Source: Dicyema japonicum (taxonomy: Eukaryota > Animalia > Dicyemida). From it: a DNA stretch of 64,000 bases. The notes under the pieces were generated by a model. That model was given only the letters and a program-made list of their open reading frames with translations, was not told the DNA's origin and searched no databases. The stretch lies in the NCBI GenBank assembly GCA_011109175.1, contig RDEW01000041.1, positions 124,001 to 188,000 of the forward strand. Reading direction: 5' to 3'. Shown piece after piece: positions 7,190-56,814 of this stretch; position 1 is the first letter of the stretch; each line of letters starts with the position of its first letter. The position numbers and the translations under genes were made by a program.

Positions 7190-9500
7190 CCTGGTTCTGG
7201 GAACCTTCCTGGATGATGAATACGTCCGTATTGGGATCTCATTGCGACTGGGATGAAAAGTTTGTGTTCCACATCCGTACCGATGCGGAGACCAGATCGA
7301 CTGTTTTGGCCTACACCCTTTTTTCTGCAGGAAGAGTGCAGGCAGATTTCCCATAAACCTGGCCTTGAACGAAGTCGTTAGGCGAGTTTTGGACGCCGCC
7401 GGACACCCCTCCATGCTCAAACCTATCGGTATTTGCAGGCGGGACTGGAAACGACCAGATGGGATGACAATCTTCCTCGTTGAAGCCGGGAAACCTATTG
7501 TCTGGGACGTTGTCTGCACCGACACGTTTGCCTCTTGCAACCTACTCCAGAGTGAGAAATTGAAACGGGAAAAGTACGCGGTCCTACCCAAGGATTTTTT
7601 GTTTGTTCTACTCCCCAATGAGACGTCTGGTTCCCTTGCGCCTGTGACGCTGGAATTCTTGAGTCGTCTAGGGCAGCGGTTCTCAACCTGGGGTCGATTC
7701 GACCCCCAGGGGTCTAAAATCAATCCAGATCGATCGTAAGGGGGTCGAAAATGAAATATTTAGGGGTCGAAAATAAATTTAATAATTTTAATTTTTTCTA
7801 TTTCAATTAAGTTAGTTTTTTTTAAAGTGGTAAACATTTGTTTTTTTTAATTTTTAAAATTAGCATGCTTGTTTTTGTTCGTTATGAGTCATCTTCTACA
7901 TTAAAAATTCGTCAATATAAAAATGAATATTTGAAAATTTTTTTGATAATAAACATTGCTAACACTATTGCTTACTGTGTAACAAGTTATCAAATGATGC
8001 AATGAAACCGTCCAAATTTTTGGATCATTTTAGGAGTAAACATTGGATAAAAAAGATAAACCATTGAGTATTTTGAAGAATTAAAGGATTCTTTTCGTAA
8101 ACAAAAAACGATTGACACTGATTTTACAAATAGTAGTGAAAAAACAATAGTTGTTGTTATTTTAAATTATTTAGGAGACTAATTGCATCCTATAAAATTG
8201 CAATGATTTTTGCCAAAAATGTGAGTTCCCATGTTTTTAGTGAAAATCTCATCAAACCATCTATATCAGCGATTCTATCAGATCTGATGGGTTTAAATCC
8301 AAACGAAATTTTAAAATCCGTGACAATTAGCAATGATTCCATTCGCCGCAGGATTGACGAAATGTCAGATAATGTTGGACATATTTTATGTGAAAAGCTT
8401 AAAATACTATTTTTTCTTAAATTGACGAAAGTCATATATGACAACCAATCAATTCTAATCGGATATGTCAGGTTAATCTTATTAGAAGCTTACTTTTTAA
8501 GATATTTTGACGATCATGCTCTTCCTACAGAAGATTTATTATTCGTCAATTATTTGGAAACTGATACGACTGGATTTTCTATTTTTTCCGTAGTCAAATT
8601 ATTTTTGGATGACAAGAAGATTCCATATGAAAATTTGGTTTCTTGTGCCACAGATGGTGCAATGTCTATGGTTGGAAAATATAAAGGATTTGCGGCATAT
8701 TTGACAAAAATATGTCCAAATGTGATTCATATACATTGTGTTCTACATAGACAACATTTGGTTTCAAAAGCTCTTTTGCCAATTCTACATGAAACGTTAA
8801 ATAAGGTTATTAAAACCATAAACAGAATTAAAGCAAGTATGATCGTCTTTTTAGAAAATTTTACTGAGGCTAACAAAACATATGTCCTTCTTGTGCTTCA
8901 CACTGAGGTTATCCAAAATTGTTGACAAAAATAGCACAATTGCTACTCTATTTTCCGACATCATACTGTGTTGAATGCGGATTTAGCATTCTACATCGAA
9001 TTGTAAATAAAGAACGAAACAGATTGGATGTGTCCACTAGAGGAGATATTCGTTTAAAAATAACACAAATAAATCCAGATATAGAATCTTTGGTCAAAAA
9101 ACATCAGTCACGGGGATCCCATTGTATTTAAATTTTTTTATTATAAATTTAGGCTAAGATACCAACTTAACATCGAGTTATTCTTTTTTTTTTTGATTTG
9201 ATTATTAACAATGAATTCATTATAGATAGTTAACTAATTTTACTTAGAATTGTCTGTTCTAAAAAAGTTTTAAGGGGTCGATTAAATATTAGGGGGGGAA
9301 AAAAAAAGTCAAGGGGTCGACGAGTTAAAAAAGGTTGAGAACCCCTGGTCTAGGGAATCGGATCGCTACACAAACATGAGACCCTCGTGAGCGCTGCTGG
9401 TTATTTGAGCGAATCTCGCTCGCCATCCTTAGTGGAAATAGCCATGCAGTCAGGGCAGCCGCTATATAACTGTATACTCTCTTTTCTTTCCTTAATAAAA
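7190..9500 (+). mobile_element. CRE-clade non-LTR retrotransposon 3' part (restriction-like endonuclease), split by the hAT at 7674-9347
   Basis: LNEVVRRVL..AGHPSML.P.G..R.D.KRPDG..WDVVCTDT; the frame resumes after the hAT as NRIATQ..DPRERCWLFERISLAILSGNS. Confidence 0.85.
7674..9347 (+). mobile_element. hAT (Buster/Charlie-like) transposon, internally deleted, with micro-introns in the transposase
   Basis: TIRs CAGCGGTTCTCAACCT / AGGTTGAGAACCCCTG; perfect 8-bp TSD GTCTAGGG (7666-7673 and 9348-9355); motifs CATDGA, HCVLHR, HTEV, TSYCVECGFS; putative introns 8150-8174 and 8472-8501. Confidence 0.95.
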
Positions 9501-9509
9501 TGAATTCCC

Positions 9510-9880
9510 AAATCCATTGGCTAAAGCATTTTTGGAAAGAGCATTATTTTCTGCCTCACTGGTTATTAATGCATCGTTTAACAATGCACCTTAAAGTTTA
9601 AAAACATTAAGAATACCTTTTGATTCCATCGAATCCATCCAAGCTTTTCATCAAGTTGCGAGAACTTTAACTTTTGGTCTGTTTTTGTTAGTTTTGAATT
9701 GTTCGAAAATTGAATCACGACTCTTTGAGATAGCGTTAACTGTCCTCCGGCAAATGTTCACTTTAAACAAAAAGGAAAATTTATCGGCAATTACTTGGCC
9801 TAGTTGTTGTCGTCCTTGTAACGCAATATTTGCATTTTTTGTTGATAGTGAATCTTGTATATCAACCGCTAGAATTACAA
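9510..9880 (-). mobile_element. pogo/Tigger (CENP-B-type HTH) transposase N-terminal fragment
   Basis: ..IADKFSFLFKVNICRRTVNAISKSR..KFSQLDEKL..WMDSMESKG[27-nt intron 9616-9590]ALLNDALITSEA resembles CENP-B HTH domains. Confidence 0.55.
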
Positions 9881-18359: not shown

Positions 18360-18511
18360 GAGAGAGCAACAAAAATTAAATAATTATTTAAATTATTTCT
18401 TTATATTATTTATTTGAAATGTACATTTTATGACAGTAAGAACTTTTAAACAGTCATACTATCATGTGGCTATTAGATTTTTGAAATTAGCGCGCGTCAT
18501 GATTTTTATTA

Positions 18512-18727
18512 GTGGCGCCTTGTGGTGATATGTAGCTTGTATGTCAAAAATTGTTTTCCCTCCCTTTGATGGTGTCATGGATCTACCTTACTGAGGAGAC
18601 CCCCAATGCCTGGCCGGCATCAATAGGATCCACTATTCTTTCCCTGGGAACAATTTCTGGAACGCTGGAACTATTCAGGATCAAGGAGTTAGTTAGTTTG
18701 GTTGCCCTTGGTCTTTGGAATTATTAA
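18512..18727 (+). mobile_element. SINE-like family 2 copy (non-coding, structured, LINE-like AGTTAGTTAG 3' end)
   Basis: Aligns by eye with 57053-57290 (+) and 27776-27970 (-). Confidence 0.75.
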
Positions 18728-18759
18728 AAAAGAATCATCTGCACACCCCAATCCAAGAA

Positions 18760-23496: not shown

Positions 23497-26083
23497 ATGG
23501 CCATGTGGTGTCATAAAATTGTAGATTTTAAAATAATAAATTTAACAGTTTTTACTTCAAAAAATCACAAACAAAATAATATCTAAGAGGTCCAAATCAT
23601 ATCTAATAGAATACGGAACCAGCAATCTCAAAGTGGACGTCGGCCAAATCGGCAACCAGGCGACTAGCACTGTTCTCTTAAGGGTAATCCTTCTACCCAT
23701 TTAAGTGCAAACAAGCTAGTATTATCAGTTCACTAGTTACGAATCCACTTCCCCCATACGCTGGGCCCAACTTACAAGTTGATACTAAAACCAGATTGAC
23801 ATCCTCTGTAAGGTTCGCTCGATATGGAAGATCACAATCTCTGTTGGAAGCCAAGGTCCTCACCAGTCGAATCATCGACCGTTCAATTCGCAGTATTCTG
23901 AGTCCTGACTTGGATGCTCTGTTACACGTATATGATGTTTCTGATCTGTAGATTCACTCCAAGACCTTGTCTTCAGATCCCCACTTTGATTCAGATGTCC
24001 TTTCCATAAACGCTGGTTTCTGACCATATAAAATTACAGCCTCACTCAATTTGGTCTTCTCCTCGTTGAAGCAGGAAAGGACCATCGCTGCTGTGCGGGC
24101 TGCCATTTCTTCTGACAAGAAGGTCATCGTCTTCCCATCGAAGGATGAGTTATACGAAAGTCCGGCCAATATTGTCCTCGTGGTCGACTCTGCTGGGAAT
24201 ATCGGTATATTTTGCCCAATGTACTCCTTCAGTGATGATTGAGGGAGCCATGGACAGACTGGGGTCCGCAGCTGTCTTCGACGTGCTGTCCACTGCCTGG
24301 GAACAGTGTGCCTTGATGGCTGTTAAATTCGAATCTCTCCACAACCAACATTTCCAGGATGCACAGGTTGTTGTCCCCAAAGTGGAAGGGGAAGAGGTTG
24401 ATTTCAAAAGCCTACAAAAGTTGCCCATTTTCTCATATTTAGTTATATGAACGAGTCTTTCATGGAGTTTTTTAAGCGGCAAAGCTCTGACAAGGTAATA
24501 AATATCGGTATTTTCCAGAAATCGAGTGTGGTAGCTTTGGATCTAGTAAGAGTAAAGTTCTATGAGAAAGTCAAAGGTAACTCTCAGTTTCATTAAGATT
24601 ACAACCTTGTTCCTGATTCCAAGGCCAAAATTTTTGACCGTTTGCTGCATAATTCTTTTACCGATTATATGATGAATTCGGATACCAGGTATTCAAAAAT
24701 TACTCAAGGTTAAAGGACTGATGGTAGAAAGTTTGGGGATGTTAGGGAGATTAGCTGTGATCACAACTTATCACACGGAATTCACGGTTCTGCAATCTTT
24801 AAGCGAGGAGAGACTCAAGTAATGGCTATGGTCGAACTTCTCTCTCCATACTCAAATGAACGAGCATTCCCCTTCTCAGCCGTAACCCGTGCTGCAGTCG
24901 ATAAGCAGTTCGAACTCCTCTATGAGGTACCTCCATTTATTGAATCGAGTTTCCCAGTTACTCCATCAACGAGATCAAGAAGACTTCTGTAATGAAATCT
25001 CGGAGGGAGTTTGGGCATGGTTTGTTTTTGGTAACATTTCAGGCGCCTTGGCTGAGCGAGCTCTTCTCCCCACAGTTCCTTTCATCGGAGACCGCTTTCT
25101 AAGCGTTGCCTGCGAAGTCACAGACTCCCATGGGTCCTCTTCAATGGCTTCTGTTTGCGCGGGCTCTTTGGCTTTAGTTAACGCGGGTTTTTTGTCAAAT
25201 TAATGAATAGGTGTGGAAGTGATTGAAGTTGCTGCTGGTGTTGCCATGGGAATGATTATTAAGGGTAAACAATGGAAGGTTATCACTGACATTACGGTTG
25301 TCTGCTCGCTGACTTTAGGGATTTGAGGACAACTTTGGTAACATGGACTTTAAACTGGCGGGGACACAAAGTGGATTGACTGCTATTCAGGTTTTTACGT
25401 GTTTGACTGTCAGGTTGATATGAAAGGAAGGGGGATGACTCTGGAAATGCTGATGGATGTCTTAAATAGGGGACATACTGCCATTTCATTCATCATTAAC
25501 GAAATGAAAAAAAGTCAGATCGGTCCAAATGATAAGAATTTTCACCCTGTGAGTGGGGTGGTCGAAGTTACCTCTTCTCAAAGAGGTAGGCTGGTAGGAC
25601 CTGGGGGAAGAAAACTCAGGAGTTTGATGAACAGTAGTGGAGCACAGATTGAAGTGATTGACGATGGTTCCGTCTTTATTTTCGCACCTAACGAGAAATC
25701 GTACGAATTTGCCCGCCAATTATTGTGTGAGGTGATGTTGGAAAGTGTGGGGCCTCTGCTTAAGCGGTACGAAATATACGACGCGCAGATAGTGGAAGTC
25801 AAGTTGTAAAGGAATGTGAGTTTAGTGACGATGGGGTGTGGGTTCGGGTATTGACAGGAATGGAGCCGTTGTTCGTACATAGAAAGAATTTGACAATAGA
25901 GCAAGTAGTGGGGTTTATGATAGACAGGTGGAGAATGGGGGAGAGTTGGGACTAAAGGAGGGGGATTTCATTAAAGTAAAGTATTATGGTATTGACCCCC
26001 TAACTGGACAACACAAACTTAATAGGTTATCAACCATATTTAATTTTGCTTATGGGATTATTAATTCTGAACAGAAAAATTGA
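23497..26083 (+). CDS. PNPT1: Mitochondrial polyribonucleotide nucleotidyltransferase (PNPase), 16 introns of 21-28 nt
   Basis: Introns 23521-548, 23684-705, 23928-951, 24016-039, 24205-232, 24420-442, 24495-518, 24577-597, 24689-715, 24927-949, 25020-042, 25187-210, 25297-318, 25391-413, 25803-825 and 25905-927 give one open frame. It contains LTSRIIDRSIR, RTDGR, HGSAIFKRGETQV, YEFP, RREFGHGALAERAL, GSSSMASVCAGSLAL, EDNFGNMDFK, KH (GPGG) and S1 (KYYGIDP) motifs. Confidence 0.95.
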
Positions 26084-26738: not shown

Positions 26739-26742
26739 AGAC

Positions 26743-28091
26743 CAGGGGTGTCAAACTCACTTCACTTCGAGGGCCGCATGTATAATAATTTCTCATCAAG
26801 AATATATTTTTTTTAATGAAAAAATATAAGAGAAACTTAATTATTTAATCACCACCCTTTAATTTTCTTTTTTGGATACAATTTTTGATATGTCAGGCTC
26901 AGCTATTTATTTAGTTCCTACTTTTATTATAGCGGATAAATTTTCATCAATGAATCTTGTTCTTAACTTTTTGAAGTGATAACCAGCGGACTGGAATATA
27001 AAAAGGAATGTCGCTGAACTGATTATTAATATCAGCAGTCTACTAAATTGCCGATGGTTTTGGGCATGATTTCTAATATATTTACTGTCTTTGTGACCAA
27101 ACTTTTCCTTTTTTAAATCTTTGAGCACAAATTTTCCTGATGAATAATACAATTAATGGAGAAATGATGACCCCAATATTCAAAGAGAATTTGCAGTAGT
27201 TTTACAAAGATTTCTTTACTTTTGGTAGTATCGTGCATTGGTACCAGTTCGAGAAATTCTACATAAGTATTAAAATCTGAATCACAGGTAACAAAAATTG
27301 CTAATTGTGCAATTCCAACGACATCGACTGTTTCATTGATCACAGTTGAAAAAATAGTCAAATTTTAAAAATTCAGAGTTTAATTAGTTTTTTGAATCCA
27401 GACATTTCATTAATGTGTTCGGTAACAGTGTTTCTGGTTAATTAAATATTTTTTAAAAAGTGGGCGTTGTCTGGCAAATATTTTTGCTTTTTTACGAGGC
27501 ATTCCATAATGAAATCACCATCGCAATATGATTTTCCAACATTGAAAGCATTCTGCTGATTTCATAGCTTGCAGTAACTGATCTGTACTTCGATTATGAT
27601 TTTTTTGTGAAATGAGTCGGTTACGTAGTTAAAGCTTCTCGCACTTTATTTACCTTTAAAACACGCATTGGACCTTCTTGGTTAATAAGCAAATAATATC
27701 TTCGAAATAATTGTATGATCGATGATTAGATTGGTGCCTTTTTAGGTTGTATTCTTTCGGTATAGCGATAAACTGGTTACATATCAAACAGTGTATTTTT
27801 CGTTTCAGAACTTGTCTCCAGGTAACGATATTGTCCCCTGGGGAAAAATAGTGGATCCTCTTGATGCAGGCCAGGCATTGGACGTCTCCTCAGTAAGGTG
27901 GAACCAATGACGCCATCAAAGGGAGAAAAAATAATTTTTGACAAACTAGTCACATGGCGCCACGCTTCCACGTGAAGATCAAGAAAAAAATTTAATTAAA
28001 TGTAAAAAATAACAAAATGATTTTTTGTGGTTTATAGCGATTAAACCGGGCCGCACCTATGCTTGTTGAGGGCCGCATGTTTGACACCTTG
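26743..28091 (-). mobile_element. hAT (SPIN/GTF2IRD2-like) deletion derivative
   Basis: TIRs CAGGGGTGTCAAAC / GTTTGACACCTTG; degenerate 8-bp TSD AATAAGAC / GATTAGAC; motifs AQLAIFV, ELVPMHDTT and CIIHQENLC. Confidence 0.85.
27776..27970 (-). mobile_element. SINE-like family 2 copy nested in hAT
   Basis: Reverse-complement match to 18512-18727 and 57053-57290. Confidence 0.75.
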
Positions 28092-28298
28092 GATTAGACA
28101 GTTACTCCATGACTTTTCGATGGAAGGAACTGATTTCGGTTAGGAAAATATGAAATTCTCTTTTAGATAATTCGGGCCATTATCTTTGGCAACAACATAT
28201 CGATGGTTTCTGGATTATCAGACATTAAATCAGTACTCAAAGTTAACAAACATATTAATGTTCAATTTCCATCGTAAGTTACTCGATAGATCTCAAAT

Positions 28299-28724: not shown

Positions 28725-30145
28725 ATGAATATATTTAAGTGCAGGTAATAATAAATCCCACAGTAGAATTGTTGAGAATGGGGAATATTTAGTGGGAGTA
28801 TCAACAGCCCTGTCTGTGATTGGGTCATTTGTTCTCCACAGACTTTTATTGGAAATGAAGGATTACTTCATAAAGGCCAACCTTTACGGCATTGACGTGC
28901 ACAAAAAGTCATCTCCTAAAATGTGGGTTTTTAGTGACTTTTCCAGTCCTGAAGCTCAGGGTGTTCTTGTAGGGGCTGTATACCTCATCGCTGTGATCCT
29001 CATGATTCCATTGACTTTCTTCAGGTTTGTCGGCGAATCTGACGTCACCTCATTCCCTCTTTTAGAGGTTTTTTATTTTACTTAAAATGCTTCACATAGA
29101 GCAGTAAATTTAATTATCAAATAAATTTTATTTAATATTTTTAATATAATATTTATAGTTATTAAGTTTTATGGTTGCCCTTCTGAGCACGTGCTGCATG
29201 ATTCTGCTGGGATTCGTCGACGACGTCCTCAACATCAAATGGAGGTACAAACTGGTAATTCCCACCCTTTCATCTCTCCCTCTCCTCGTGATCTACTTTC
29301 TGACTCCCACAACACCACAGTGGCGGTCCCTCGACCTTTGGAGTTCATATTTGGAAGGATCATTGATCTCGGGCTTTTTTACTACGTTTATATGGCCATG
29401 TTGGCTGTGTTCTGCACAAACGCTATTAACATTTACGCGGGATAAACGGTCTTGAGGTTGGGCAGAGTCTGATCATCGGCCTCCCTTTTGGTTCACTCCT
29501 TTATCAGCCTTGCTGCTCAAACGGGGACCGAAAACTGCTCAAAGTGGACGCATTACTTCTCCGTGATGAACTTGCTGCCCTTTTTAGCCCTCAGTTTCGT
29601 CCTCCTCAAGCACAACTGGTGTCCTGCCAAGGTTTTTGTGGGGGACACTTACTGCTACCTGGCGGGAATGTTTTTTGCCGTTGTTTCAATTCACGGACAT
29701 TTTTCGAAGACTCTCCTTCTATTTTTCGGTCCCCAAATTGCCAATTTCTTGTACTCCCTGCCTCAGCTTTTCTATTTGATTCCGTGTCCCCGTCACAGAA
29801 TGCCCAGGTAGTCCCCTCCCTCATTTAGATATGTTGAGGATGCTGACAAGGTTGTGGCCAGTGAGGTCACCTTCAGGCCAACCTCCTTGTCTTTTCTTGG
29901 AAGGACCGTGTGGAGTCTCTTTTCTAAATTGAGAATGGTCAGTTACATTATGGATGAGGATGGACACGTGACTTGTAATAATTTCACACTACTGAACGGT
30001 GTGTTATGCATGACTGGCCCTATAAGTGAAGTGAGACTGACTTGTTTGCTTTTGTTACTCCAGGTTGGTTGTCCTCACTATTTAGGTGGTTTGGTCGATG
30101 TTTGCTTTTTATGTGAGATATTTTTTGGTGGATATTTTGTTTTAA
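28725..30145 (+). CDS. DPAGT1: UDP-GlcNAc:dolichyl-phosphate GlcNAc-1-P transferase (ALG7); introns 28745-766, 28923-946, 29068-158, 29808-828, 30064-085; three apparent frameshifts
   Basis: [40 protein letters not shown](I)[38 protein letters not shown] and NNFTLLN; TAA at 30143-30145. Confidence 0.93.
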
Positions 30146-31445: not shown

Positions 31446-31454
31446 CCTATCCTG

Positions 31455-34001: not shown

Positions 34002-34579
34002 TTAAGCATGACCCTTCTTGCCCTTAAGTTTCTTAACATAAAAGTCCAACTCAGAACCCTCAAGAATATACCCATCACAACGACCATGTTGTCCTGGCCG
34101 TGAAGTAACGATAGCTGCAAATAATTGTAGAATATAACAAAATAATTTTCCACTCACTAACTGATCCAACAGAGAAGTTGTCAAATCAGCTACTTTGTCA
34201 GTCATCTGATCTCCCTTTTTCCTTGGAAGGATTACTCCATAGTAATTCTCATATAGAGTAGGAAATGGAGCACAGTCAATACTTAGAATACACCCTTTCA
34301 CTATAGTCTTTTTTCTGAGCAGTTCCGTCGATGTACAATTGTAAACCACATCATTTATTCTAGAACGCTTTGTAAATCCTTCCGATGGCCATGAGAAACT
34401 TCCTGAAGACAATCTCAATGCTCTGGTCTACTTCCTTAGTTGATAGATTTGTATTCGCTGGTTGACGGCCCATATCAAACTTTCTTTTCTTCCTGAATGC
34501 AGGAATTCGTCCGCCTGTCTTCGTTTATGTTGTGAGTCTCTTGAAATTCTTAAGCATAATTGTGACACACATCACCCAT
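34002..34579 (-). pseudogene. RPS8: 40S ribosomal protein S8 unprocessed pseudogene
   Basis: M(G)ISRDSQHK.KTGG..KKRKFDMGRQPANT, RALRL..FSW, DVVYN and SRPGQHGRCDGYILEG. It has a frameshift near 34525, lacks the HTVRVRGGN segment and part of the central region, has an apparently mutated first-intron acceptor, and retains a 24-nt intron near 34115-34138. Confidence 0.85.
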
Positions 34580-35812: not shown

Positions 35813-37843
35813 CAGTGTTTCCCAACCTGGGTTCCGCAAAGTTCAAAAAATTTTTTTATTCTTTTTTAAAAAAATGATTTTTCAAACCGGATTGATTTAA
35901 TTTGCGCGTGTCTAAGTGGAGTTTTGTGACAGTGCATATCTTAAAGTTCGATTGTATCGAGAAAGTTATATTGTCTTTGGTTTCACATGGACTGGGGACA
36001 TGGATTGCCCTCTTCCACTTTGTGTTGTTTGCGGTGAAAAACTTACGAATAGTGTTATGGCTCTAACAAAATTTTTCAACCAAGCACCCTGAACTTTCAA
36101 AGAAAAAAAGAATATTTTTGCGGAAATTGGACCAGAATAAATTTCAAGCATCCCGTTTTACAAAAAAAGTTCAAAATAAACGAAAAAGCACTTCATGTTA
36201 GTTATGCTGTTGCTGAGATTACCGCTAAAAATATAAAATCGCATACTCTCGCCGAAACTGTTATTTTGCCTGCATGCAAAGAAGTAGTGAAGATAATGTT
36301 CGGAGATATTGCTGCCGCTAGCTCGACTTAATTCCTATTTCTAATAATTTGTGAGCAAACGCATCAAGGATATAATAATAATGAAGCCTTTTCACGAGAG
36401 CCATAGTATTTATAGCTCCGCATAGGCAGGACACACACTTTATTTAAGTAAAGAACAGTTAATTTTAACTAATCGTAGAACCAAGGAATGATCTTCACTT
36501 CTTCTTTTTCTTGTGTGAGTGTCCTTTTAGACCATCCAGTTCCGCAGTGTGTTTCCACTGATGACGGCGTCACTCGCAAACCATTTCTGCATCGTAGATG
36601 CGTGGAACCTTCAACCAGGTGAACAGCAGCGAGATTCAAACCCGTAGCCTAAGCCACTTAAGCTCGACACCGAACAATTATGCCACCGACTATCAAAAAT
36701 ATTCTGATGACATTGAAACCACTTTGGTTCGGCGAATAAAAAAATCTGTGTTTTTTGCCTTTCAAGTGGATGAAAGGAAAAATGCAACTCTTGTTTTCGT
36801 TCGATATTGTGCTCCAGCAATGACTGGGCAATTTAAAGGCTTTGTTTCTATTGCGAAAAATAAGTATCCGAACATTATTTGCACGCATTGTTTTCTTCAT
36901 CGCGAGGCATTGGTCGCAAAAACTATTGGGCATGAACTTAAATGTGCTTTGGAAATGGTTGTAAAAATAATTAATTACATCAAAATGAGGCAGTTGAAAT
37001 TGAGACAGTTCTCGAAACTTTGTGAAAATGCAGAACATTCAGTTTTGATTTTCCATACTGAGGTAAGATGGATCTCAAAGGGAAACATGTAAATTAGTTT
37101 CTACGAACTGAGACGAATTGTCGGCTTTTTGTATACAAGAAAAGTTGGATGACTTTATTGAATGCCTCAATGATGAATGTTGGTGTTGCAAATTAGCATA
37201 TTTTCCATGAACTCAATGTTCTCAACAGCAGCATGCAAGGGAGAACTGAATGTCTATTGAGTTGCGCGGACAAAATAGCTGCTTTTCTGAAAAAAACTAC
37301 AAATATGGAAACGACATATCACGAATAGAAACTTGGAAATGTTCCCTCCAGTGCAAGAAAGAAATTTTAAAGAAATTGTACCACAAATTGTAGACCATTT
37401 GGAGTCACTATTTACATGTACAAATAATTTGAACTCTATGAGGAATCCTTTTGCTGAATACGAAATAACTGGAAACGAGCTATCATTAAAAGAGGAAGAA
37501 GATCTTGCGTTTGTTTCAAGTGTCAGAACGTTAAAAATGGAATATTTACAGCTTATTGATTCGTTTTGGCTGATCGTTAAAAAAGAATATCCTATTCTGG
37601 CAAACAAAGCTTTAAGAGTTTTGGTTCAGTTTTCAACGACTTATCTCTGTGAAAATGGATTTTCTGAATTAACAAATATAAATCATAAAAAACGAAGACC
37701 TGCGTTTTATCCCTGTCTAGGACAAATCCAAATATTACAGAGCTATGCAAGAAACATACTGATGTTTGTTAAAAACTATATAGGGGTTCCGGACAAAATG
37801 AAAAATGTCGATAGTGTTCCGTGCTCTCAAAAAGATTGGGAAC
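35813..37843 (+). mobile_element. hAT (ZBED5/8 Buster-like) transposon, decayed, right end truncated
   Basis: Left TIR CAGTGTTTCCCAACC; partial right TIR GATTGGGAACC; motifs PLCVVCGEKL, FAFQVDE, THCFLHREAL, HTEVRWISKG and FSTTYLCENGFS. Confidence 0.9.
36374..36691 (-). mobile_element. tRNA-headed SINE family 1, full length, with RTE-like LINE 3' tail
   Basis: A-box-like TGGCATAATTG and B-box-like GGTTTGAATCT at the 5' end; degenerate 11-bp TSD ATCAAGGATAT / ATCAAAAATAT; tail matches 48041-48074 at 32 of 34 positions. Confidence 0.85.
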
Positions 37844-38239
37844 CTCAGTGTTTCAGGTGAATCGAAGATACTTTGTCAGGCTGCAAGCCCGCGAGTTCTT
37901 TAATCTAGCGATAACCTCTGAGACCTGCTTCTCTGATAATAGTTCTTGTAAGGTTTTTCGATTTATGGGACGTACTTTGGTATCAGGTATTTATAGAATG
38001 CTCGAAGCTAATCGCAGCGTAATGTTTCATAATAGGTTAGGGTGTAGATTGTGTTCTTTACCGGTTCCAATTGCATCTTCCAACTCTGATTTAATTTGAT
38101 TTAGTGTTTCCAGAATTTATTAGATGAACTTTTCCCGTTGAGGCGATTGATCAGGTGTCACCATCTCTGATCCTGTGGGCTCTTATGCTCAGGCTGATGT
38201 TTTTATTGAGTTGTGTGATGGTTTTCAAAGATTTCAAGT

Positions 38240-41293: not shown

Positions 41294-43863
41294 TAGGGCG
41301 ATTTTTTTAACCGAAAAAATGTAACTTTATTAACCTAAAAACTAAAAAAATTAACCCAAAAATTTAACTTTATAACTAAACAATAAAAACACTAAAACTT
41401 TTTGTTACACATACAAATTACATAATTTTCTAAATTTCTGGTAGAAAATTTCGGTTGGATCTTAGAAAACTCTTTATTTGAGAGAAAATTCTTTCAACTG
41501 AGCACGAGGTCGACTGACAATTCATGAGTAATGAATACTCGGCAGGAGATATGTGAATTAGTCATTTTCATTATGTTTGAAATATCATTTTTTGAAGCCT
41601 TTTATTTATGTATTCTTTAATAAATTTGTTGTCATTTCCAAATTCCAACGATTCTAAACTATCATATGCTTGTTCAATTGTGGAGCGTGTACTTTGGTAA
41701 TAATATCTGCAATAGCGACATTATTCGGAAACTCGGAATGTTCAATATCTTCGGATAAGATCACATAGACTGCTAACTAACAGGTGGTTTTTGAGACTTT
41801 GTTTAGCTGTTCGAACTAGATATTCATCAAATATTTTGAACTCCGATCAGATTTTCTGAATAGTATATAGCGGCCTTAAGCCAGGTCCCCCATCTTGTCA
41901 AATGCACACGAGGTGGAATGGCGATGTTTTTGAATATTCGTTTTCTTCTACTGTTCTTGTTAATTGCTGCTTGTACAGTAGCTATCATCAAATCAATTTC
42001 CGGATAAGAGTCTCTTATTTTCTCACAACAATTGTGTAATGATGAACGGCACATGTGACATGGAATAACTTGGGGTAAAGATTATTAAGTGTTTTGCCAG
42101 CTAAAACATAAAATTTTACCTGATTTCATATAATTTGCAGCATCCGAAATTAACAAAAGGAAAATTTCCCTTTGAACCAAACTATTTCTAAGTACATCGT
42201 CGACTATCTGAATAATGATGTTCTTGTTAGGAGCAGATTCTATCGCCTTAAACGATATCAGATATGTTGTTTCGGGAAAATTTAATGATCCGATCATCAC
42301 AGCAATGTATCTTTGGTCCCGGATTTTTGTTTCATCCGTATTAGCAAAAACTTTTTGATTGCTACAAAATAAAGTAAATTTTTATACACAAGTTTTTGTT
42401 AAATTAACAATTTTTGATCCATTATGATTTGATCCACACAGCTTCAAGGTTTTGATGGTGAGGGAACTCGTACAGAGCCTCCGTAAAACAATTCTCTAAG
42501 CCACGGCATAGATAGTTTGTTTAGTGGAATATCAGATTCTATAAATGCTCTGGTTACTTTTAGAGCCCAATCATCATTTTTGGAATATTGGTCAATGTGT
42601 GTTTGGGACGATTCGGTCAGATTATCTACAAAAAATAATCGTTATTTCGCAAAACTCAATGAATTTTGATGTTTCTGTGAGGATCGATAAAAATTTACAA
42701 AATGTCTTTTCTCGCATTTAATATTACACAAACAGAGACGACAATATAATACACCATTCTCAAGAATAATACATTCTGTAGGATAATCCTTCACAATGGC
42801 CTTAGCTATAATTTGGTACAATTTTGCTATCTTAAGCATGTCAGTTATAAATTTTAGTGGCAAAATATATTACAGGGTTTTCCGATTTATTTAATAACTT
42901 TGTCATAAAATTTAATAACTTTGTCAAAATATCTAATAACTTTGTCATAAAATTTAATAACTTTGTCAAAATATCTAATAACTTTGTCATAAAGTTTAAT
43001 AATTTGTCAATATTTAATAACTTTGTCAAAATGTTTAATAACTTTGTCAAAATACTTAATAACTTTAAGAAGATGCTAATAAAAATTGAAGAAGATGCTT
43101 CATTTACGCTGAAGAATTTACAAAATTCTTTATTTGATGTGAAAAGAAAAAATGTCTCTCAATCGACAATAAATAGGACGCTAGAGACATTTGGATATAG
43201 TTTAAAAAAATCAATTTGTACCTATGGCGAGAAATTCTACAATAAATATGGAAGAAAGATATAGATCTGCCAGAAAAAATTGAAGTTGATAATCAACGGC
43301 TTATTTTTATAGACGAAATGGGAGTCAATTGTTTGATGAGATCCAAATTTGGAAGATCTATAAAAGGAGTTACTTCGAAAAAATGTACTAGAAACATCCA
43401 AACATCGGAGAAATTTCATCGATGAATTAATAAACGCAATCCAAAACATCGGAGAAATTTCATAAGATGTGTGCAATAATTTTTGTATAGCCACATGCGA
43501 GATATTTAGTTAAAGCACTGGCTTATGAAGAATTTTAATTTATAGTTGTTTTTTTCAATTAATTATAAAATTGGTTTCTTTTAATTTGACCCTTTACAAA
43601 GTTATTAAGTATTTTGACAAAGTTATTAAACATTTTGACAAAGTTATTAAATATTTTGACAAATTATTAAACATTTTGACAAAGTTATTAAATTTTATGA
43701 CAAAGTTATTAAATTTTATGACAAAGTTATTAAATTTTTTTGACAAAGTTATTAAATTTTATGACAAAGTTATTAAATAAATAGGAAAACCCTGTATTAA
43801 TAGTTAATTTAAAAAATTAATAAATTAAATCAAAAATTATAAGGTTAAAATAATTTTAACCTT
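41294..43863 (-). mobile_element. hAT of the CGGBP1/DUF659-like group with at least 3 micro-introns, inserted in a LINE 3' tail
   Basis: 8-bp TSD ATTATGAC (41286-293 and 43864-871); TAGGGC terminus; zinc finger LYCRLC..H....KH, IPLNKL, DET, SDAANYM..AG..L..LYPKLFHVTC, TRWGTWLKAAIYY and CSVER; introns 42655-42626, ~42389-42362 and 42119-42101. Confidence 0.88.
42873..43794 (+). mobile_element. IS630/Tc1-like element with ~200-bp TIRs built from 21-bp tandem arrays
   Basis: TA TSD; CAGGGTTTTCC...GGAAAACCCTG; about 8-9 units of TTTAATAACTTTGTCA(A/T)AA(T/A)A per arm; internal transposase remnants FTLKNLQ..VSQSTINRTL..GYSLKK and FFIDEMG. Confidence 0.92.
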
Positions 43864-44817: not shown

Positions 44818-47152
44818 ATGGAAATACCTTCATTATATGCTCATTGCATTAAAACTATTCAAAAATACATTAATGGGAAAAAATATCAAGAATTGAGCGA
44901 AAAAACTAAAAAAATGATTTCTAAAAGATTATTAGAAGAACCGAGTTATTTAGAAAATCTATTTGCCGATGAAAATCCAAGTGAACAATATTCACGTATA
45001 TACAAGATTCCAGATGTAGTACATAAGAATATTTTCTACGTTAAATTGACAAAGCAAAGAGTTGACATTAAAGATGTTGTCAAGATGATTCATGTTTATC
45101 CGAATTTGTCGAATATTCAAATATGGGAAATAACTTCATCAGAAAAGCATCCTTTACTACCATTCTCACCCAATAACGTCAAATCATTCACACTTCTTGA
45201 ATATAATAACCCAGATTTGCTACATTCCCTATTTATGACTGGATTTAACAAAATAACATTCCTTGAACTTCTTCATGGCAAATAAAAAGTGTCAACAATC
45301 TTTAAAAAATAGACATTGAAATATGGAAAAACGGAACACATAAAATTATCCAACATATGATTATCAACTTTGAAGAATTTGTGGCAAACTTAAACAGTCC
45401 AGAGTCCTTGTGGTTTGTTTTTTTATAATCCAGTTATTTTGCACTCGTGAATACTGAAGTTTTTTAATCTTAAAATATTTTTTGTGAATGAGATTTGTTG
45501 TATCCTCGAAAAAGCAAAGAACCTTACTTTCTAGATTTATCAATGACTATGATCGACGTATCAAGACTCACAGAGTAATTTATTTTAGTAATCATAGCCA
45601 AATGCCGAAATACGGATTGAACAAATTTCAGGATGGAAAAACCTTATTTTTTAATAAAGATATAAACGAATTGGTAAATTTGAGAAAATAATATAGAATG
45701 ATCGAGAATCGGCATTAAATAACTTAGTCAGGTCTGTAACTACCAATCTATTGGATGAAACCATCTATAGGTTTCGCAATAAGAAAATTCGAAGTAACTT
45801 TTTAAATCGATTTTTGAGAGTATTTTAAAATATTAATATAGATTATCTATTATGAATATAATGTTGAATCCCATAAATATGCAAGTTATACTCTGTAATT
45901 TGTTATCTAACTCCAGATATATTCTATATCACACTATCCAAACGCATCACATTTCGTATTTTACTCGTCGGTATGAGTTGATTTTATTCGTAGTTTAATT
46001 TATGACATTTTTCTCAATGTCATTATGTTTTGCATATGTGATAGAGAATTGGTATTTGAAATTTTAAATTTGTAGGATATTGCTCCTGATTGTTTAGAGT
46101 TATTAATCTTTTTAAAACCATGGGAGACGCCAATTTTCGTTGGTTAATTATTCATTTTAGTTCAATGCGTTTTCATGCATGTTAATTGCAATAGCCACAT
46201 CTCCCGACTTTGATTATTATATATTTAGAAATTGTCGAAGTATCATGAAAAGTTTAAGTGTCGAATTTCTAACTTATTTTGGGCATTCTGGACTCATCAA
46301 AGTTTAAAAATTGTATTTTTAGTACTGCCTTCAATGCATCAGAACATTAGCTATCGAATTTGATGGGTTCCTAGGTATGTTGAGCTGGCTATTAGGTATT
46401 TAAAATATTTTTAGTTAGACGAAAATGAATTGAATGTGAATTTGTTTATTGATTTTGGCGGACTTGGGGTTATTTGTCATATTTTCGAAAGATACCCGTT
46501 CACACATTCCGACATAAAAATGATGCTGGCACTACTTGAGATTACGGAAAGTCTAGCTAAATTTTCGAAATCTAGACGTTTACTGGGGGCTTCTAGATTG
46601 ATAGAATTATTAATGTAAACTTGCAAATTATTAAAAGGAATCCTACTTACGACGATTGGGATTTTTATCTGCCCTATAAAATCAGGAGCTGTATGTGTCT
46701 TGTATTGAGTGATTCGCATATTTCCCTTACATTTATAAATTTACATATAGGTGATATGAGTCCCCGAGAAATGATTCTAGATAAAATTTTTCAATTTATA
46801 ATTATGTATCCTTATGAAGCCTGTCGTGATAAAGAGATAAGGTTATTCAAATTTTACTATCAAGGTCATTTATGTCAACAGTAAATCTATTATGCGTAAA
46901 CACAGATGAGCGAATTTGGCTTTGGGCTGTGTGGGAACTTGCTAATTTAACCACTACATCTTGTTAATCTTAATTTTATAATAGCAAATATATTTATGCT
47001 CAAATTGATGAAGTATGACATTATTCAGAAAATTAGTAATGTATGTTCACAATCCAATATGAAAGAGATCCATAACTATGCTTTGATTTTTAAAAGAAAT
47101 TACAATGTTGCTATTTTTATAATTTTAGAATTTCATTGAAAGTCAATGCTAG
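44818..47152 (+). CDS. Divergent ZER1/ZYG11-like protein (BC-box-like start, LRRs, ARM-like C-terminus); many micro-introns; exon structure only partly resolved, possibly a pseudogene
   Basis: IPSLYAHCIK start, LRR-like ILEKAKNLT(F)LDLS, NVNLFIDFGGLGVICHIFERYP..MLALL and WLWAVWELANLT resemble ZER1/ZYG11 ARM-region motifs. Confidence 0.6.
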
Positions 47153-48092: not shown

Positions 48093-48838
48093 TAAAAATC
48101 TAAAGGATTTCTTTTTTTAACGTTCAATGTCAGAGGACTCTCTAGTGCATGGAAAAAATAGAACTTTGTGAAGACGTTTCAAAATATAAGATATCAATCG
48201 GATGTCTCCAGAGACAAAAATATCGAAGGAGTTTGAAGAACAACACGCAAGTTTAAGTTAATCTTACTCTCTGGGGGATCAAAACATTAGGACTAGGATT
48301 CTCTGTAAGAAAGGACCTAGTTCAGCGCATATACCGTTAATAAAAAAGACCGCAATATTGTCACTGATGCCCGTGATTGTGGAGGGTCTATAATTGACAG
48401 TGATCACAAGATGGTGATTGCCAAAACGCGCTTAAATAAACTTATGGGTCTGCAAGGGATGAAAAGAAAGTGCAATGGACACACGGAACTGCGGGGGAAG
48501 GGATATGTTATAGGCCATCTAAAGAACAATACCATCCAAGGAGAGGAATTCAGAAAATATCTGGATTGGAAGAAATGTAAGTAGATTTGGCATTCCAAAT
48601 TGCGTGGACCTTGGTCAAACAGAAGATCATGATTGCTGCGGATCTATATAAAAGAGGACTACGTAACTAATACACCCACTGAAGAAATAACTGCTTTGAA
48701 ACTTCTTGCTAATCAACAAAAGGCGATATGGATACAATGTATAAATCACTGGTTCCCAAAGTGTGCCTGGAGGCATCCTAGGGTGCCTCATTTTGGATCC
48801 TGGGTGCCTCAAAAAAATAATGATATTTAAAAAAATTA

Positions 48839-49628
48839 CAGGGTTTTTATTCAAAGTGAAAACTTATTCACATCAATGTGAGAATCATTCACATCAAAGT
48901 GAGAATTATTTAAATTGACATTAAATAAGTTTTAATCTTCGTAATTGTTAATGTCTCGAAATTTTGTCTGATGATAATAGGCGTTTTATTATTAATATGT
49001 ATTCCAATGGATCCACAGCTAAGTCAATTAGCGAAAATATATGTATTTCTGCGAAAACTCTCTATCGAATTATTGGAGATTTCAAAAAAATTGGGAAAAT
49101 TGAAAGTAATCCAAAAGGCGGTCTTCGAAATATAAAAATCACTAAAGAAATTTTTCTGTTTATAAAGAATGAAGTATCGGATTCGTGTGATATTTCTTGT
49201 AAAGAAATATCCTCGAAAATATTTGCTAAATTTGGTTAAACGATCGGAACATAAGCGATCCATTATCATTTAGAAGGATTCAACTACTCTTTTAAAAAAA
49301 TTCAACTTCTTCCAGAACGAAGAATATCAAATGATGTGGATGCTTTACGTAAACAACATGCAAAAAAATTATTGGCACACTATCCAATACTCTAGAAAGC
49401 AAATTTTTTGTGGATGAAGTTCGATTATACTTCATGAAAATGATGGGTGAAATAAATAAATTAATCTAATCCCTAATTTTCATTCGATATATAAATTTTT
49501 GTTCATTTTTATACGAGTATTGTATCTTAACTAAAGAAATTCTCACTTTGATGTGAATAATTCTCACATTGATGTGAATGATTCTCACTTTGATGTGAAC
49601 AAGTTCTCACTTTGAATTGAAAACCCTG
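48839..49628 (+). mobile_element. IS630/Tc1-like element with 21-bp-repeat TIRs, internally deleted
   Basis: TA TSD; CAGGGTTTT...AAAACCCTG; 3-4 units of TCAAAGTGAGAATCATTCACA per arm; HTH ORF LSDDNRRFII..ISAKTLYRII..PKGG, then YSFKK and FVDE. Confidence 0.92.
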
Positions 49629-50835
49629 TAATTTAAATTAAATATTTTGTTATAATATTTTACGCCTACTTGAATTTCGCGTGTATTTTTTTCTTGTTGG
49701 TTGATAGTATTCCTATTAAAGTTTATAACTTTATTATTCCATTTCTAGAATAGAAAATATAAGAAAAAATGTCTTGCTTATGGATTTTGCCAGTTTGAGG
49801 ACGATTCGAAGAGAGCAGAGTGTATGATGTGCTACAAAATTATGTCAAAAGAGACGTTAGTACCATCTAAGCTCCATTGACATCTCGTTGTTCAGCACAA
49901 AGAATTGAAAAACAAAAAATACATCTTTTTTGAAAAAATGCTTGCTGCTTTTAGTAAATCGAAAGATTCAATGAAAAACTTCACAAAAGATGAAAATTTA
50001 AAAGCCACTGAAGCTTCCTATGAAGTTGACTATAACTTTTAATTTATCTTAGATAAGTTACCTTATTGCAAAAAATAGAAAAGCTTACACTATAGTGGAA
50101 TCTTTAATAAAACCTATTCTCAAAAATTTTATCTTGTTTATGTGGGGGTGATAATTCTCAAAAAATTAATTCAGTCTTCTAACAGCACTGTAAAATGACG
50201 CATTTATGATTTTTCCAATGACATTGAAAATTAATTAGTTTCCCGCTTAAAAAATCTGATTATTTTTCAATTCAGTTTGACAAATCAACTGATGTTGAAG
50301 GATTATCAATGTTATTAGTTTTGTTCGTTGTTTGTTTGATTTTACACTGCAACAAGATTTTTTATTTTGTAAATCTCTTGAAAAAACACAACTGGTCAAG
50401 AAATTTTCAACGCAATCGATGATATGATTTCTCCCCGAATTATGTAGGGAAAATTGTATTAATGTTTGCACTGTCGGTGCTCAAGCAATGATCGGGAAGT
50501 TTGCTGAAGACTGCTTATTAAAATATGAACATAAACTGGGATTGTTTCATTTTTGGTCTGAATGCAGTTGGAAATATGAAGAAAGGCAAAAAAGCAATAA
50601 CTTTTTTATTACCATTTTCGACTACCTACCGCAGCGAGTTCGGTTTTTCCTTATATTCCTCAACGAAAACAAAGTACAGGAAAAGTTTGAAGCTTCCTCA
50701 GATATAAGATTGCAACTATCCACATTGACCCCGGATATTAAAGGTCTCTGCAAGCAAAAAACAGTTACACCTTTCACATTAATTCTGTTGCCTTAATAAA
50801 TAAAATCAGAAATATTATTATTAATAAAAACAATT

Positions 50836-50984
50836 TTTTTTTTTTTTTTTTTTTTTTTTTGATTGGAATAGCCATACTCCGAGGGAACTCGTTCGCAATC
50901 CACTCAGCAGGCTTCCTCAACTGACATTTGTTTAATTGTTATATATTTGATATTAAAAAAAAAAAAAATAAAAAAATAAAAAAA
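50836..50984 (+). mobile_element. Extremely 5'-truncated CRE-like retro-insertion with 5' poly(T) and 3' poly(A)
   Basis: 13-bp TSD AATAAAAACAATT (50823-835 and 50985-997); encodes IGIAILRGNSFAIHSAGFLN*, similar to the CRE C-terminus at ~9410-9470. Confidence 0.8.
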
Positions 50985-51670
50985 AATAAAAACAATTAGG
51001 GTGCCTCAAATTTTTAGAAAATACAAAAAGGTGCCTCGCCTCAAAAAAGTTTGGGAACCACTGGTCTAAATACAAATGACAAAAATACGAAACAGAGGCT
51101 AAAAAAGAAAAAAACAGTCATCAAAAAGAAAATAAGAAAAGCTGCACGTCGGATATTAAAGAACGAATCAATAACAAAATAGGAGAAAATCGAAAGGCCT
51201 TAGACAATGCGAAGTTTTATGAGGCTGTTGGACAAATCAGAAAACTACCAATGAAAACACTGACTTTACGAGATGAAAAAGGAAAAAATAGCCGACAAAA
51301 AGTTGCAGAACTTATAGCGGACTATTTTGATGCACAATTCATATCAAAAATAGCAAAAAACTCACAATTAACAGGGATCGGGGAAAATTAGACAAAGAAA
51401 TAACTTTGGAAGAAGTATTGACAGCAAGTTTCAAACTGAAGGACAATAAGAGTCCCGGTCCAGATGGCTTGAATGGTGAATTTTTCAAATATGGAGCGCA
51501 AAAACTATACAAGACAATTGCCTGGATTCTAAACGAAACGTACGGTAAAGTAGTTACCTTGCCACTTGGAGAAGGACTACTGGTACCAGTACAGCGGGGA
51601 AAGTTGAGAACCAAAGACCAGTGGTTTTGACCAACACATTACGGAAGTTACTAGCCAATTGCACATGCTT

Positions 51671-52330
51671 TGTCAGATCTCGCCATCTCGCACGTGTCTA
51701 TAATAATAATATTCCCCATACAGATAATGGAGAGAAATTCAAAAATTCCCACTGCGAAAATTACAATATTTCCCATGTTACGCAACAGCACGAGGTTTAT
51801 GGATACAAGGACAAGTCGAACGGTATTTTTTGTTTAATGTCAATAGATGTAGTCAATAAATAAAAGATGGATCTCATTGGCGAGTGCATCGAGAGGCAAT
51901 TTTGGATGCTACATTCATTTGATGAAAGACATTGTTCGCGATTATAAGCAAGCTGTCCACGATACAACAAAACAAACACCATTTGAAATTTTTTTCAATG
52001 TGAATCTGAAAATATCAAAAAAGGGAATTAGAAGCGATATAAAATGAAAATCTTCAATATAGAAATCAATATGGATTGAAAGAATATAAAGGAAAAATCT
52101 TCAATATCAAATATTTGAAAAAATATATCACTGATTAGTCCAGGAATTACGCAAATTTCAGAAATTGGCAAAATGCTACCATCAACATTTTGCCAATAGC
52201 CATCCAGCACTGATCAGATACATAATAATACATCTGAGATATCTAAAATACATAACATTGAAGTATACCTGTGAGAAATCTAAGATATTTAAATATAACT
52301 ATGAATAAATAATCTTTTTGAAGATAAAGT
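51671..52330 (+). mobile_element. Decayed retroviral-type DDE integrase (Ginger/TDD-like) fragment with a micro-intron
   Basis: HTDNG, IQGQVER[intron GTATTTTTTGTTTAATGTCAATAG] and VHDTTKQTPFEIF; starts with TGT; no matching right TIR seen. Confidence 0.65.
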
Positions 52331-53130: not shown

Positions 53131-53134
53131 GGAA

Positions 53135-54540: not shown

Positions 54541-54720
54541 GGCGAGCGAAATTTGCTCAAATAAACCAGCGGCGCTCAGGGGATCTCCTGATCGTGTAGT
54601 AATCTGATTCTTTAGACGATTCAAGAATTTCAAGGGAACCAGACGTCTCAACGGCGAGTGGAACAGACAAAAAATCATTGGTAGGACCGCGTACTTTGCC
54701 CGCTTCAACCTCTCGGCATA
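54541..54720 (-). mobile_element. CRE-like RLE fragment
   Basis: VPLAVETSGSL..RSGDP.ERRW..EQISLA; same family as 7190-9500. Confidence 0.7.
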
Positions 54721-54880
54721 GTATTGTATGACTCCGAGACTTCAAGATATTTACCTTTTTCGAAGACATGTGTTTTACTTTTTTACAATATGAAGTATTT
54801 TCCGTTTGTCATGTTCGGGTAGGAAATTTGACTTTTGAAAATACTTTTGTTTTTTACCAAAGTGTCATAAGCACATATTA

Positions 54881-56814
54881 TGTCACATGGGCGGCGCGTA
54901 ACGCATGGGCAGCCTGTTACATTTTTTCGACCTTGAAAAGATTTTTTGATTATCCGACATTATTATTATTAATGTCGGATCACTGGGTCAAAAAGAAAGA
55001 AATAAAAGTTCTCATCTAACTAAGTGATCCCAGACCGACAAAGTGAGGATGAGTCCTCATTGGATTATCCGACATTTAATTTTGTATATCCGATTTATAT
55101 CGTGATTTAATCCTGTTAAATTAGTTTTTTATTCATAAATGTTATGATTATAAAGATTTTATTTTTTATAGCGGTAAACCTAGATTTCTAGCGTGATTTA
55201 TAGCATGGAAGATTATTTTGTTGCAATGGCTTCTTACAAGGGTTTTGTGAAAGATTGCGTTGAATATCAAACTTTAAAAGATGCTTTGCATGATAAATTT
55301 CCCGAAAATCTTCCGAGGCACCGAAAATATAGGCTTGTAAAGAAGATAGAGAATTTTTCTATTATCAATGACAGGTATTGTAAATTTTCAATAATTTTAG
55401 ACTGTATCTTAAATCAACTGATCCCAAGTTAGTCATATCCCTGGATAATGAAACCGAAATGGAGCATGTTGCGAAATCGTTGCACGAGTTTTCACACGGA
55501 GGAGTCAATAAAATTGAGTATGAATGTCGACAAAGATACTTCACTGTAAAGAATGAGATTATCAGAAAAGTCATTCGAAATTGTGAAGTCTGCAAATTTT
55601 CGCGTCCTTTAAAAGTTCGTGATTTTTTATAATTGTAGATTGGAGATATAAATCACCATGTGTTTGCTTCTTCTCCAAATGAACGTTTTCAGATAGATCT
55701 AATAGACCTGAAAAAATTTTCAACATTAAATGAAAATTTCAAATGGATTTTAACGGTCATTGACATATATAGTAGGTGGTTTTTTTTTAATTTATAGATT
55801 CGCTTTTGTACGACCACTCTATAATAAGTCTGGTAAAGAAGTATGTGAAAACTTAAGATCTTTGTTCCGCCTGAATGGGCCATGTAAATTTCTTCAGTCG
55901 GACAATGGTTCTGAATTTAAAAATCAAGAAATAACAAAACTTTGCGAAGATTTTAACATTAAGCAAATTCACGGAAGGCCTAACAATCCACGAGCACAAG
56001 GAATTGTCGAAAGATTTAATCAGACGATCACGAGGAAGTTGTCAAAAATGCTGGATAACAGTGAAAAAAAGTGGCTTGATAAATTAGAAAGTGCTGTCTA
56101 CAGTTACAACATATCGGTCCATTCATTTTCTAACGAAAGTCCTTTCGAAAGATATCGAGGAATTAAGGGAATAAATTCAATAATTAATGGTTATACTTAT
56201 ATCATTATGACTTAGATAATTTAAGTGATGAGTGTGCGATTCCAGAACAAATTGACGATTTGGTTAATTGTTCGACTCCAGAATCTATTGAAAATTCACG
56301 TAGTTTGATTTAAAAAATTTATATCTAGATAATTCCCAGTCAGATAATTTGTGTCCGAATGCGAAGAGATTCAATTCGAAATTAAATCGATTGAAGAAAA
56401 TTCAATTATTACAAAGCTATGAACAGGAAAATGAATGTTCATAATAGTAAATATACTTTTAACATGGGAGATAAAGTATGAATCAAAAACATTAATAAAT
56501 AGGTTCGGGCTAAAAAGGACTTTGGAACAAATCCCTCATTGCGACTGGATAAGTTTGAGTCTCAGTATTATCCAGTTGCAGAAATAATTAATATTTTATC
56601 GAATAATCGCGTGGAGGTAGTTTTAAATAGTTTAATTTGATAGATAAAAAATTCGAAAGGAGAAATATCGACTGTATTAATGAGTAGACTAAAAAAAGTT
56701 ACTTAAATTTAATTTTTTGTGGTTAATAAATCATTTATAAAATTAATTGAAGTTAATCTTGGTTCAAGGTTAATGTAACAGGCTGCCCATAGGTAACGCT
56801 TGGCCCATGTGACA
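54881..56814 (+). mobile_element. Ginger2/TDD-type DNA transposon with both ends intact
   Basis: TGT...ACA termini; ~43-bp imperfect TIRs (TGTCACATGGGC..ATGGGCAGCCTGTTACATT); perfect 5-bp TSD TATTA (54876-880 and 56815-819); integrase gene inside; no RT or gag. Confidence 0.92.
55205..56706 (+). CDS. DDE integrase/transposase with 7 micro-introns (55375-400, 55615-638, 55776-797, 56190-215, 56300-328, 56476-502, 56617-643); frame break near 56340-56410
   Basis: HHCC (LHEFSHGG..CEVC), FQIDLIDL, VIDIYSRF, QSDNGSEF, AQGIVERFNQT, YNISVH..SPFE and C-terminal FNMGDKV..SRLKKVT*. Confidence 0.9.

Follow-up and report, generated by a model that had tools for sequence, protein, structure and literature searches.

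Putative spliceosomal micro-introns of 19-30 nt in DNA transposons of several families from Dicyema japonicum

DNA transposons of several families in a 64,000-nucleotide (nt) stretch of Dicyema japonicum (GenBank assembly GCA_011109175.1, contig RDEW01000041.1, positions 124,001 to 188,000 of the forward strand) carry short GT-AG segments within their transposase genes. The whole stretch is called the window here, and positions are counted from its first letter. As judged from the sequence, these segments are largely real spliceosomal micro-introns, presumably removed by splicing. They are seen in a Ginger2/TDD-type element, in two Buster-type hATs and in a second integrase, and probably in further, more degenerate copies. 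Independent and largely neutral gain of introns by resident elements is the explanation that we consider probable. All eight segments quoted in the first-pass annotation run from GT to AG where it had placed them.

Results

Seven introns in a Ginger2/TDD-type transposon

The best-preserved element of the window is a near-intact transposon of the Ginger2/TDD type, in which all seven splice-site pairs are intact.

54881-56814, + strand: Ginger2/TDD-type DNA transposon; terminal inverted repeats (TIRs) of about 44-48 nt from TGTCA, target-site duplication (TSD) TATTA, Pfam Integrase_H2C2 and rve
55205-56706, + strand: transposase gene of 8 exons with a single frameshift near 56392-56412
55375-55400, + strand: intron 1, 26 nt, phase 2; exact in 4/8 homologues
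55615-55638, + strand: intron 2, 24 nt, phase 0, in-frame stops; exact in 19/19 homologues, absent in 8/8 loci
55776-55797, + strand: intron 3, 22 nt, phase 2; exact in 55/56 homologues, absent in 31/31 loci
56190-56215, + strand: putative intron 4, 26 nt, in an unconserved linker; placed by frame only
56300-56328, + strand: putative intron 5, 29 nt, in an unconserved linker; placed by frame only
56476-56502, + strand: intron 6, 27 nt, in-frame stops; exact in 7/7 homologues
56617-56643, + strand: intron 7, 27 nt, in-frame stops; two comparisons in support

The TGTCA termini and the TIR arms of 44-48 nt agree with the TGTNR ends and TIRs of about 45-300 nt of the Ginger2/TDD group, and the TATTA flanking both sides agrees with its AT-rich TSDs of 4-5 bp. 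The protein combines an H2C2 zinc finger with a DDE core and lacks the YPYY and GPY/F motifs and a reverse transcriptase (RT), as read from Pfam matches and directly from the translation. All exons are free of stops in the phase that the introns impose, except for the single frameshift, which may be genuine or an assembly error, since comparable shifts of one base occur in the host gene DPAGT1. Beside the element, at 56950-57027 (- strand), lies a small fragment of a third Ginger-like integrase.

To place the introns, exon ends were mapped on homologous proteins, with the exons searched and aligned separately; five of the seven introns could be compared with homologues in this way. Of the seven introns of the first-pass annotation, homologues agree with introns 2, 3 and 6 and support 1 and 7, and restoration of the frame is what speaks for 4 and 5. 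At intron 7 a single blastp comparison is offset by one residue, and the junction is colinear by eye with a Dictyocoela muelleri locus. Each of the seven introns shifts the frame or holds stops, and therefore the Ginger protein would need splicing.

Introns in hAT elements and in other fragments

Buster-group hATs have short TIRs and an 8-bp TSD with a central TA. Two elements of this group carry introns in the window.

7674-9347, + strand: Buster-type hAT 1, internally deleted; TSD GTCTAGGG
8150-8174, + strand: probable extra intron of Buster 1, 22-25 nt; homologues have 2 residues against 29 nt in the window
8472-8501, + strand: intron of Buster 1, 30 nt, in frame, no stop
48747-51063, + strand: Buster-type hAT 2, degenerate; TSD match 7/8, nested IS630/Tc1-like element at 48841-49625
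50025-50052, + strand: intron of Buster 2, 28 nt
51823-51846, + strand: intron of the second Ginger-like integrase, a degenerate fragment at about 51700-52050; 24 nt
41294-42860, - strand: hAT remnant labelled CGGBP-like, the family not backed by any homologue; an IS630/Tc1-like element cuts it upstream
42626-42655, - strand: candidate intron 1 of the CGGBP-like hAT, unanchored, 30 nt, in-frame stop
42362-42387, - strand: candidate intron 2 of the CGGBP-like hAT, unanchored, 26 nt; donor 42387 suits the frames better than 42389
42101-42119, - strand: intron 3 of the CGGBP-like hAT, 19 nt
9590-9616, - strand: candidate intron, 27 nt, in a putative pogo/CENP-B fragment, both unanchored

The TSDs of the two Busters (GTCTAGGG in element 1, 7/8 positions in element 2) are those of the group, and the transposase is related to FAM200/ZBED5/SCAND3-like proteins (34-47% identity, PF27073 matches). 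Both Buster introns of the first-pass annotation fit the homologues. Segment 8472-8501 is a 10-residue insertion relative to all well-aligned homologues, among them crustacean, nematode and scorpion relatives, and the Buster 2 intron follows ASYE with an exact junction in all three homologues whose alignment reaches it. The probable intron 8150-8174 was missing from the earlier list; an indel of 1-2 nt lies near it. A further candidate at 27285, in Buster 4, was rejected because the sequence there reads as coding.

In the second integrase the 24-nt segment splits an ER-x-NQ motif. Its removal leaves one residue between ER and NQ, as in 122/122 homologues, in agreement with the earlier assignment. 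The CGGBP-like remnant shows hAT motifs in its sequence. Removal of its third intron gives a D-to-CxxH spacing of 25 residues, which is that of the DUF659-type hAT of the window; of the three introns first proposed there, this one is thus supported by motif spacing, and the other two lack homologue support, the second being likelier to start from 42387 than from 42389. No homologue of the CGGBP-like hAT or of the pogo fragment was found in Pfam, PDB or IMG/VR. In the latter fragment no Pfam or PDB match to CENP-B-type helix-turn-helix (HTH) domains was found, and its pogo identity, like its candidate intron, is tentative.

Chance, controls and elements without introns

Clean insertions between colinear coding segments are seen for Ginger introns 2, 3 and 6 (in part for 1 and 7), for both Busters and for the second integrase. 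An insertion fixed by homology has a chance of about 3% of showing GT..AG ends within 4 nt of the site, which gives about 1e-9 jointly for the six anchored cases. Raw GT..AG segments of 19-30 nt are frequent (about 30 per kb), and the unanchored cases in degenerate copies are weaker; a T-rich filter used in the control for such segments was chosen after the introns were known, and that control is a rough one.

In other transposons of the window no intron was seen as far as they are readable. These are a DUF659-type hAT (about 4440-6270), the Busters at 35813-37850 and 26743-28092, and two IS630/Tc1-like remnants. Introns are therefore not obligatory for DNA transposons in this window. The first-pass annotation had reported that long interspersed nuclear elements (LINEs) lack such introns. 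Comparison of the LINE copies of the window agrees, in that no intron-like indel was found between them, although this is a weak test.

The introns were also compared with their flanks, with each other and with repeats. They resemble their flanks no more than shuffled sequences do, so tandem duplication of the flanking exon was rejected. An introner origin was rejected as well: 3/105 intron pairs were similar at p<0.05, which is the chance level, and no other copy occurs in the 64-kb window. Repeats at the intron boundaries measure 0-5 nt, like those of host introns. Intronisation of coding sequence was excluded at the anchored sites, where the residues are absent in homologues.

Comparison with introns of host genes

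The window has a GC content of about 0.28-0.44, with dense transposon fragments around few host genes. The genes used for comparison are listed here.

1-820, + strand: eIF4A3; introns 139-164 (26 nt) and 307-328 (22 nt), confirmed on homologues
24447-26080, + strand: mitochondrial-type PNPase; ten GT-AG introns of 21-27 nt, all exons stop-free in the resulting phase
28730-30150, + strand: DPAGT1/ALG7; introns of 21-24 nt and one AT-rich intron of 91 nt (29068-29158)
44818-47150, + strand: AT-rich non-transposase gene; about 11 candidate introns of 18-24 nt

The transposon introns had been described as host-sized. Their range is indeed that of the host, and the match is not exact: the median is 26 nt (19-30) in transposons versus 23 nt (21-27) in host genes (p=0.003). 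Intron density in Ginger is about 5.4 per coding kb, versus about 7 per kb in PNPase. Intron GC tracks the local DNA (0.14 in transposons, 0.11 in the AT-rich multi-intron gene, 0.36 in the GC-richer housekeeping genes). AT-richness was rejected as a special mark of transposon introns, since the candidate introns of the gene at 44818-47150 are equally AT-rich. This gene, which has no Pfam or PDB match, presumably resembles ZYG11/ZER1.

In site and phase the 22-nt intron of eIF4A3 coincides with a Culex intron of 4.5 kb. As read from this alignment, at least one host intron is at an ancestral animal position, unlike the transposon introns. The eIF4A3 exon is 64-70% identical to all matches listed, none of which is named as a myxozoan, and an Rfam search gave no match. 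The intron-rich PNPase of mitochondrial type and the intron in common with Culex speak against a microsporidian or fungal host; together with intron size and repeat load they would also fit a myxobolid myxozoan. Single-base frameshifts of DPAGT1/ALG7 near 29300 and 29440 are probably long-read assembly errors.

Relatives of the elements and polarity of the introns

The best matches of Ginger are open reading frames (ORFs) without interruption in two microsporidia, Dictyocoela roeselum (54-72% identity over conserved exons) and D. muelleri. In a tree of exon 4 (55799-56188), built from search matches only, three Dictyocoela proteins and an unnamed Joint Genome Institute (JGI) protein join Ginger in a clade with support 100/96. 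Further microsporidian proteins (D. muelleri, Nosema granulosis) occupy three subclades adjoining this clade. By the approximately unbiased (AU) test on this tree, the six named microsporidian proteins do not form one clade, and the donor is not fixed by the test. The closeness of Ginger to elements of the amphipod microsporidia Dictyocoela suggests horizontal transfer between parasites, the direction being inferred. Horizontal exchange between microsporidia and animals is already known (PMC4202319).

At the level of DNA, no extra base is present in the fetched loci at the positions of Ginger introns 2 (8/8), 3 (31/31) and 6 (3/3), and 123 of 149 homologous proteins span the site of intron 3. 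Two loci took no part in any comparison: L048, whose contig is labelled human-skin metagenome and is probably from a skin yeast rather than human, and L041, which gave the same match. The simplest reading of these alignments is that the Ginger introns were gained on the branch of the window, probably after horizontal transfer.

Loci of Oratosquilla and Trichuris are likewise uninterrupted at the Buster intron sites of the window. The same intron positions in distant animals had been named beforehand as evidence against gain; the Buster sites are empty in the crustacean and nematode relatives. Within the window, intron positions differ between sister families, with no site in common. Busters 1 and 2 share none, the site of Buster 2 is uninterrupted in Busters 1 and 3, and the site of the second integrase is uninterrupted in Ginger, where ER-x-NQ is intact.

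Other features of the window

The hATs without visible introns lie at 4440-6270 (- strand), 26743-28092 (- strand) and 35813-37850 (+ strand), the last two with nested insertions. Elements with long inverted repeats were found at 42868-43799, 48841-49625 and 30646-31445. Those at 42868-43799 and 48841-49625 have arrays of 21-nt subterminal repeats and remnants of a Tc1-like HTH; the former cuts the CGGBP-like hAT and the latter is nested in Buster 2. An unclassified short repeat is present three times (18500-18730, 27806-27963, 57058-57289), with one copy inside Buster 4. A degenerate ORF remnant at 57827-58960 (+ strand), possibly a transposase, ends with a 22-nt GT-AG segment (58928-58949). 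A compact gene at 23600-24450 (- strand) stands head to head with PNPase (24447, + strand) with almost no spacer. An ORF of the ribosomal protein S8e family at 34002-34418 (- strand), directly behind a LINE fragment, may be a retrocopy or else a host gene that was interrupted.

Discussion

Largely neutral, independent gain of introns in resident DNA transposons of several families is probably what produced the present arrangement. The host would be an animal with ultra-short spliceosomal introns throughout its genome. Transposons would have entered this lineage intronless, Ginger probably by horizontal transfer from microsporidia, and would have gained introns independently while resident. If the spliceosome needs little beyond GT and AG about 20-30 nt apart, short AT-rich insertions, with DNA repair as their probable source, could be removed by splicing and become fixed in a family by drift. 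As cut-and-paste elements are transmitted as DNA, every later copy would inherit a gained intron; retroelements of the non-LTR type (lacking long terminal repeats) would lose theirs. The introns would be removed by the ordinary host spliceosome, on which the transposases would depend because most introns shift the frame or hold stops. Independent gains are the best reading of the empty sites of the relatives together with the differing sites of the sister families.

Several points weigh against this explanation. The introns bear no trace of a mechanism of gain in the flank, pairwise and repeat comparisons. The Ginger tree consists of one exon of 130 residues. Microsporidia are an intron-poor lineage, and the named close relatives of Ginger may themselves have lost introns. 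Databases built from called ORFs favour intronless or spliced sequences and under-represent split genes. The first-pass annotation had proposed that this genome actively gains introns. Relatives without introns at every testable site and the differing sister sites bear out gain as such; ongoing gain is unsupported, the traces of origin being gone, and the gains may thus be old.

Gain could instead have been driven by selection, if introns raise transposase expression, evade self-nonself surveillance based on introns and the exon junction complex (EJC), or suit a splicing and export machinery adapted to short exons, with variants that carry introns displacing those that lack them. The intron density of Ginger, near that of the host PNPase, and its preservation with every splice-site pair intact would fit, as would HUSH's recognition of long DNA that lacks introns (PMC7619638) and the compliance with host splicing argued in PMC3584928. 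Yet the DUF659-type hAT, the two other Busters and the two Tc1-like remnants have no intron, most intron-bearing hATs hold only 1-3, and no evidence for such a pathway was found in the host. We regard selected gain as rather unlikely, and the intron/EJC passport of the first-pass annotation is weakened by the same intron-free hATs. A stronger form, also unlikely and a little more speculative, is that selection in this lineage favours a high intron density in transposons that arrive without introns, since long transcripts that stay unspliced would be silenced or exported poorly. If so, gaining introns would be part of how a transposon acquired by horizontal transfer is naturalised. The Ginger of microsporidian origin, with its seven introns, would mark the end of this course, and the hATs without introns would be newcomers or elements that are failing.

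The introns might also be old, present in the ancestral elements, shrunken together with the host introns and lost from the intronless relatives. Host introns did shrink in place, as eIF4A3 and Culex show, intron loss predominates in CACTA transposases (PMC4158355), and introns occur elsewhere in Ginger1 (PMC2836005) and in BuT2/Tip hATs (PMC3942097). Such an origin may hold for the CGGBP-like hAT. In general it is improbable: complete loss would have to recur in many subclades of Ginger and in the Busters of crustaceans and nematodes, and the sister families of the window have no site in common. It is very improbable that the segments are no introns at all, being AT-rich insertions or assembly errors with chance GT..AG ends. 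GT..AG segments of this length are common by chance, the assembly shows single-base frameshifts even in DPAGT1, and the pogo case and the first two CGGBP-like cases could be of this kind. Against it stand the joint chance for the anchored cases, the size class in common with host introns and the exact restoration of frame in a near-intact gene.

Neutral gain in resident transposons would matter in several ways. Well-polarised intron gains are rare in animals, and their mechanism outside introners is an open question; transposon families with intronless close relatives, many copies and independent sisters offer repeated, datable gains and thereby a test case for intron origin. The state of sub-30-nt introns would be imposed on new introns as well, and not solely reached by the shrinking of old ones. 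The Ginger relationships point to a probable transfer of a transposon from microsporidia to an animal parasite. In annotating transposons and genes of such genomes, a minimum intron size of around 15-18 nt would be needed to keep intact transposases from being taken for broken ones.

A limited literature search turned up neither a report that transposases of myxozoan type repeatedly gained micro-introns nor one of a Ginger2 with seven introns whose microsporidian sisters have none. The claim of an undescribed host-transposon system was nevertheless overstated, since host-sized transposase introns, variable sites within a transposon family, and gain after transfer or domestication are already known. 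Introns below 30 nt have been published for myxobolid myxozoans, where they are the norm, and for Dicyema (PMC13644364). Those introns are GT-AG, with a median of 22-27 nt, reduced splice signals and conserved positions in host genes; that work covers shrinkage of host-gene introns, and not transposase introns or gain. Of the myxobolids, Myxobolus rasmusseni has 68% repeats and 9% retroelements (PMC11557904), and Myxobolus atp6 gained introns after its move to the nucleus (bioRxiv 10.1101/2024.02.09.579586).

The window Ginger shares with the Ginger2/TDD elements of PMC2836005 TGTNR ends, short TIRs, a 5-bp AT-rich TSD (TDD-4/5) and an H2C2 plus DDE integrase-like protein without RT. Introns, 1-4 of them, are described there for Ginger1, whereas seven, of 22-29 nt, lie in the Ginger2-type gene of the window, whose closest relatives are microsporidian elements without introns. 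In the BuT2/Tip hATs of Drosophila the transposase is split by host-sized introns, 58-60 nt for three of the four as computed from its exon coordinates (PMC3942097); they belong to a different hAT group and size class, and gain is unpolarised there. Introners also supply new spliceosomal introns (PMC9860276, PMC12130899), but the window introns are not copies of each other and have neither repeats nor target duplication. Acquisition of host-type introns by an intronless incomer is known for the alpha-amylase of Basidiomycetes after horizontal transfer (PMC3584928) and for domesticated transposon genes (PMC3257199). Those are fixed single host genes, whereas the window elements retain TIRs and TSDs, and several families are involved independently. 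In the Glomhopper CryptonA family, as in the window, intron positions are variable and unshared and intronless copies occur (PMC13465315); these are fungal tyrosine-recombinase elements whose intron size is not extreme, and some of their introns are confirmed by RNA-seq.

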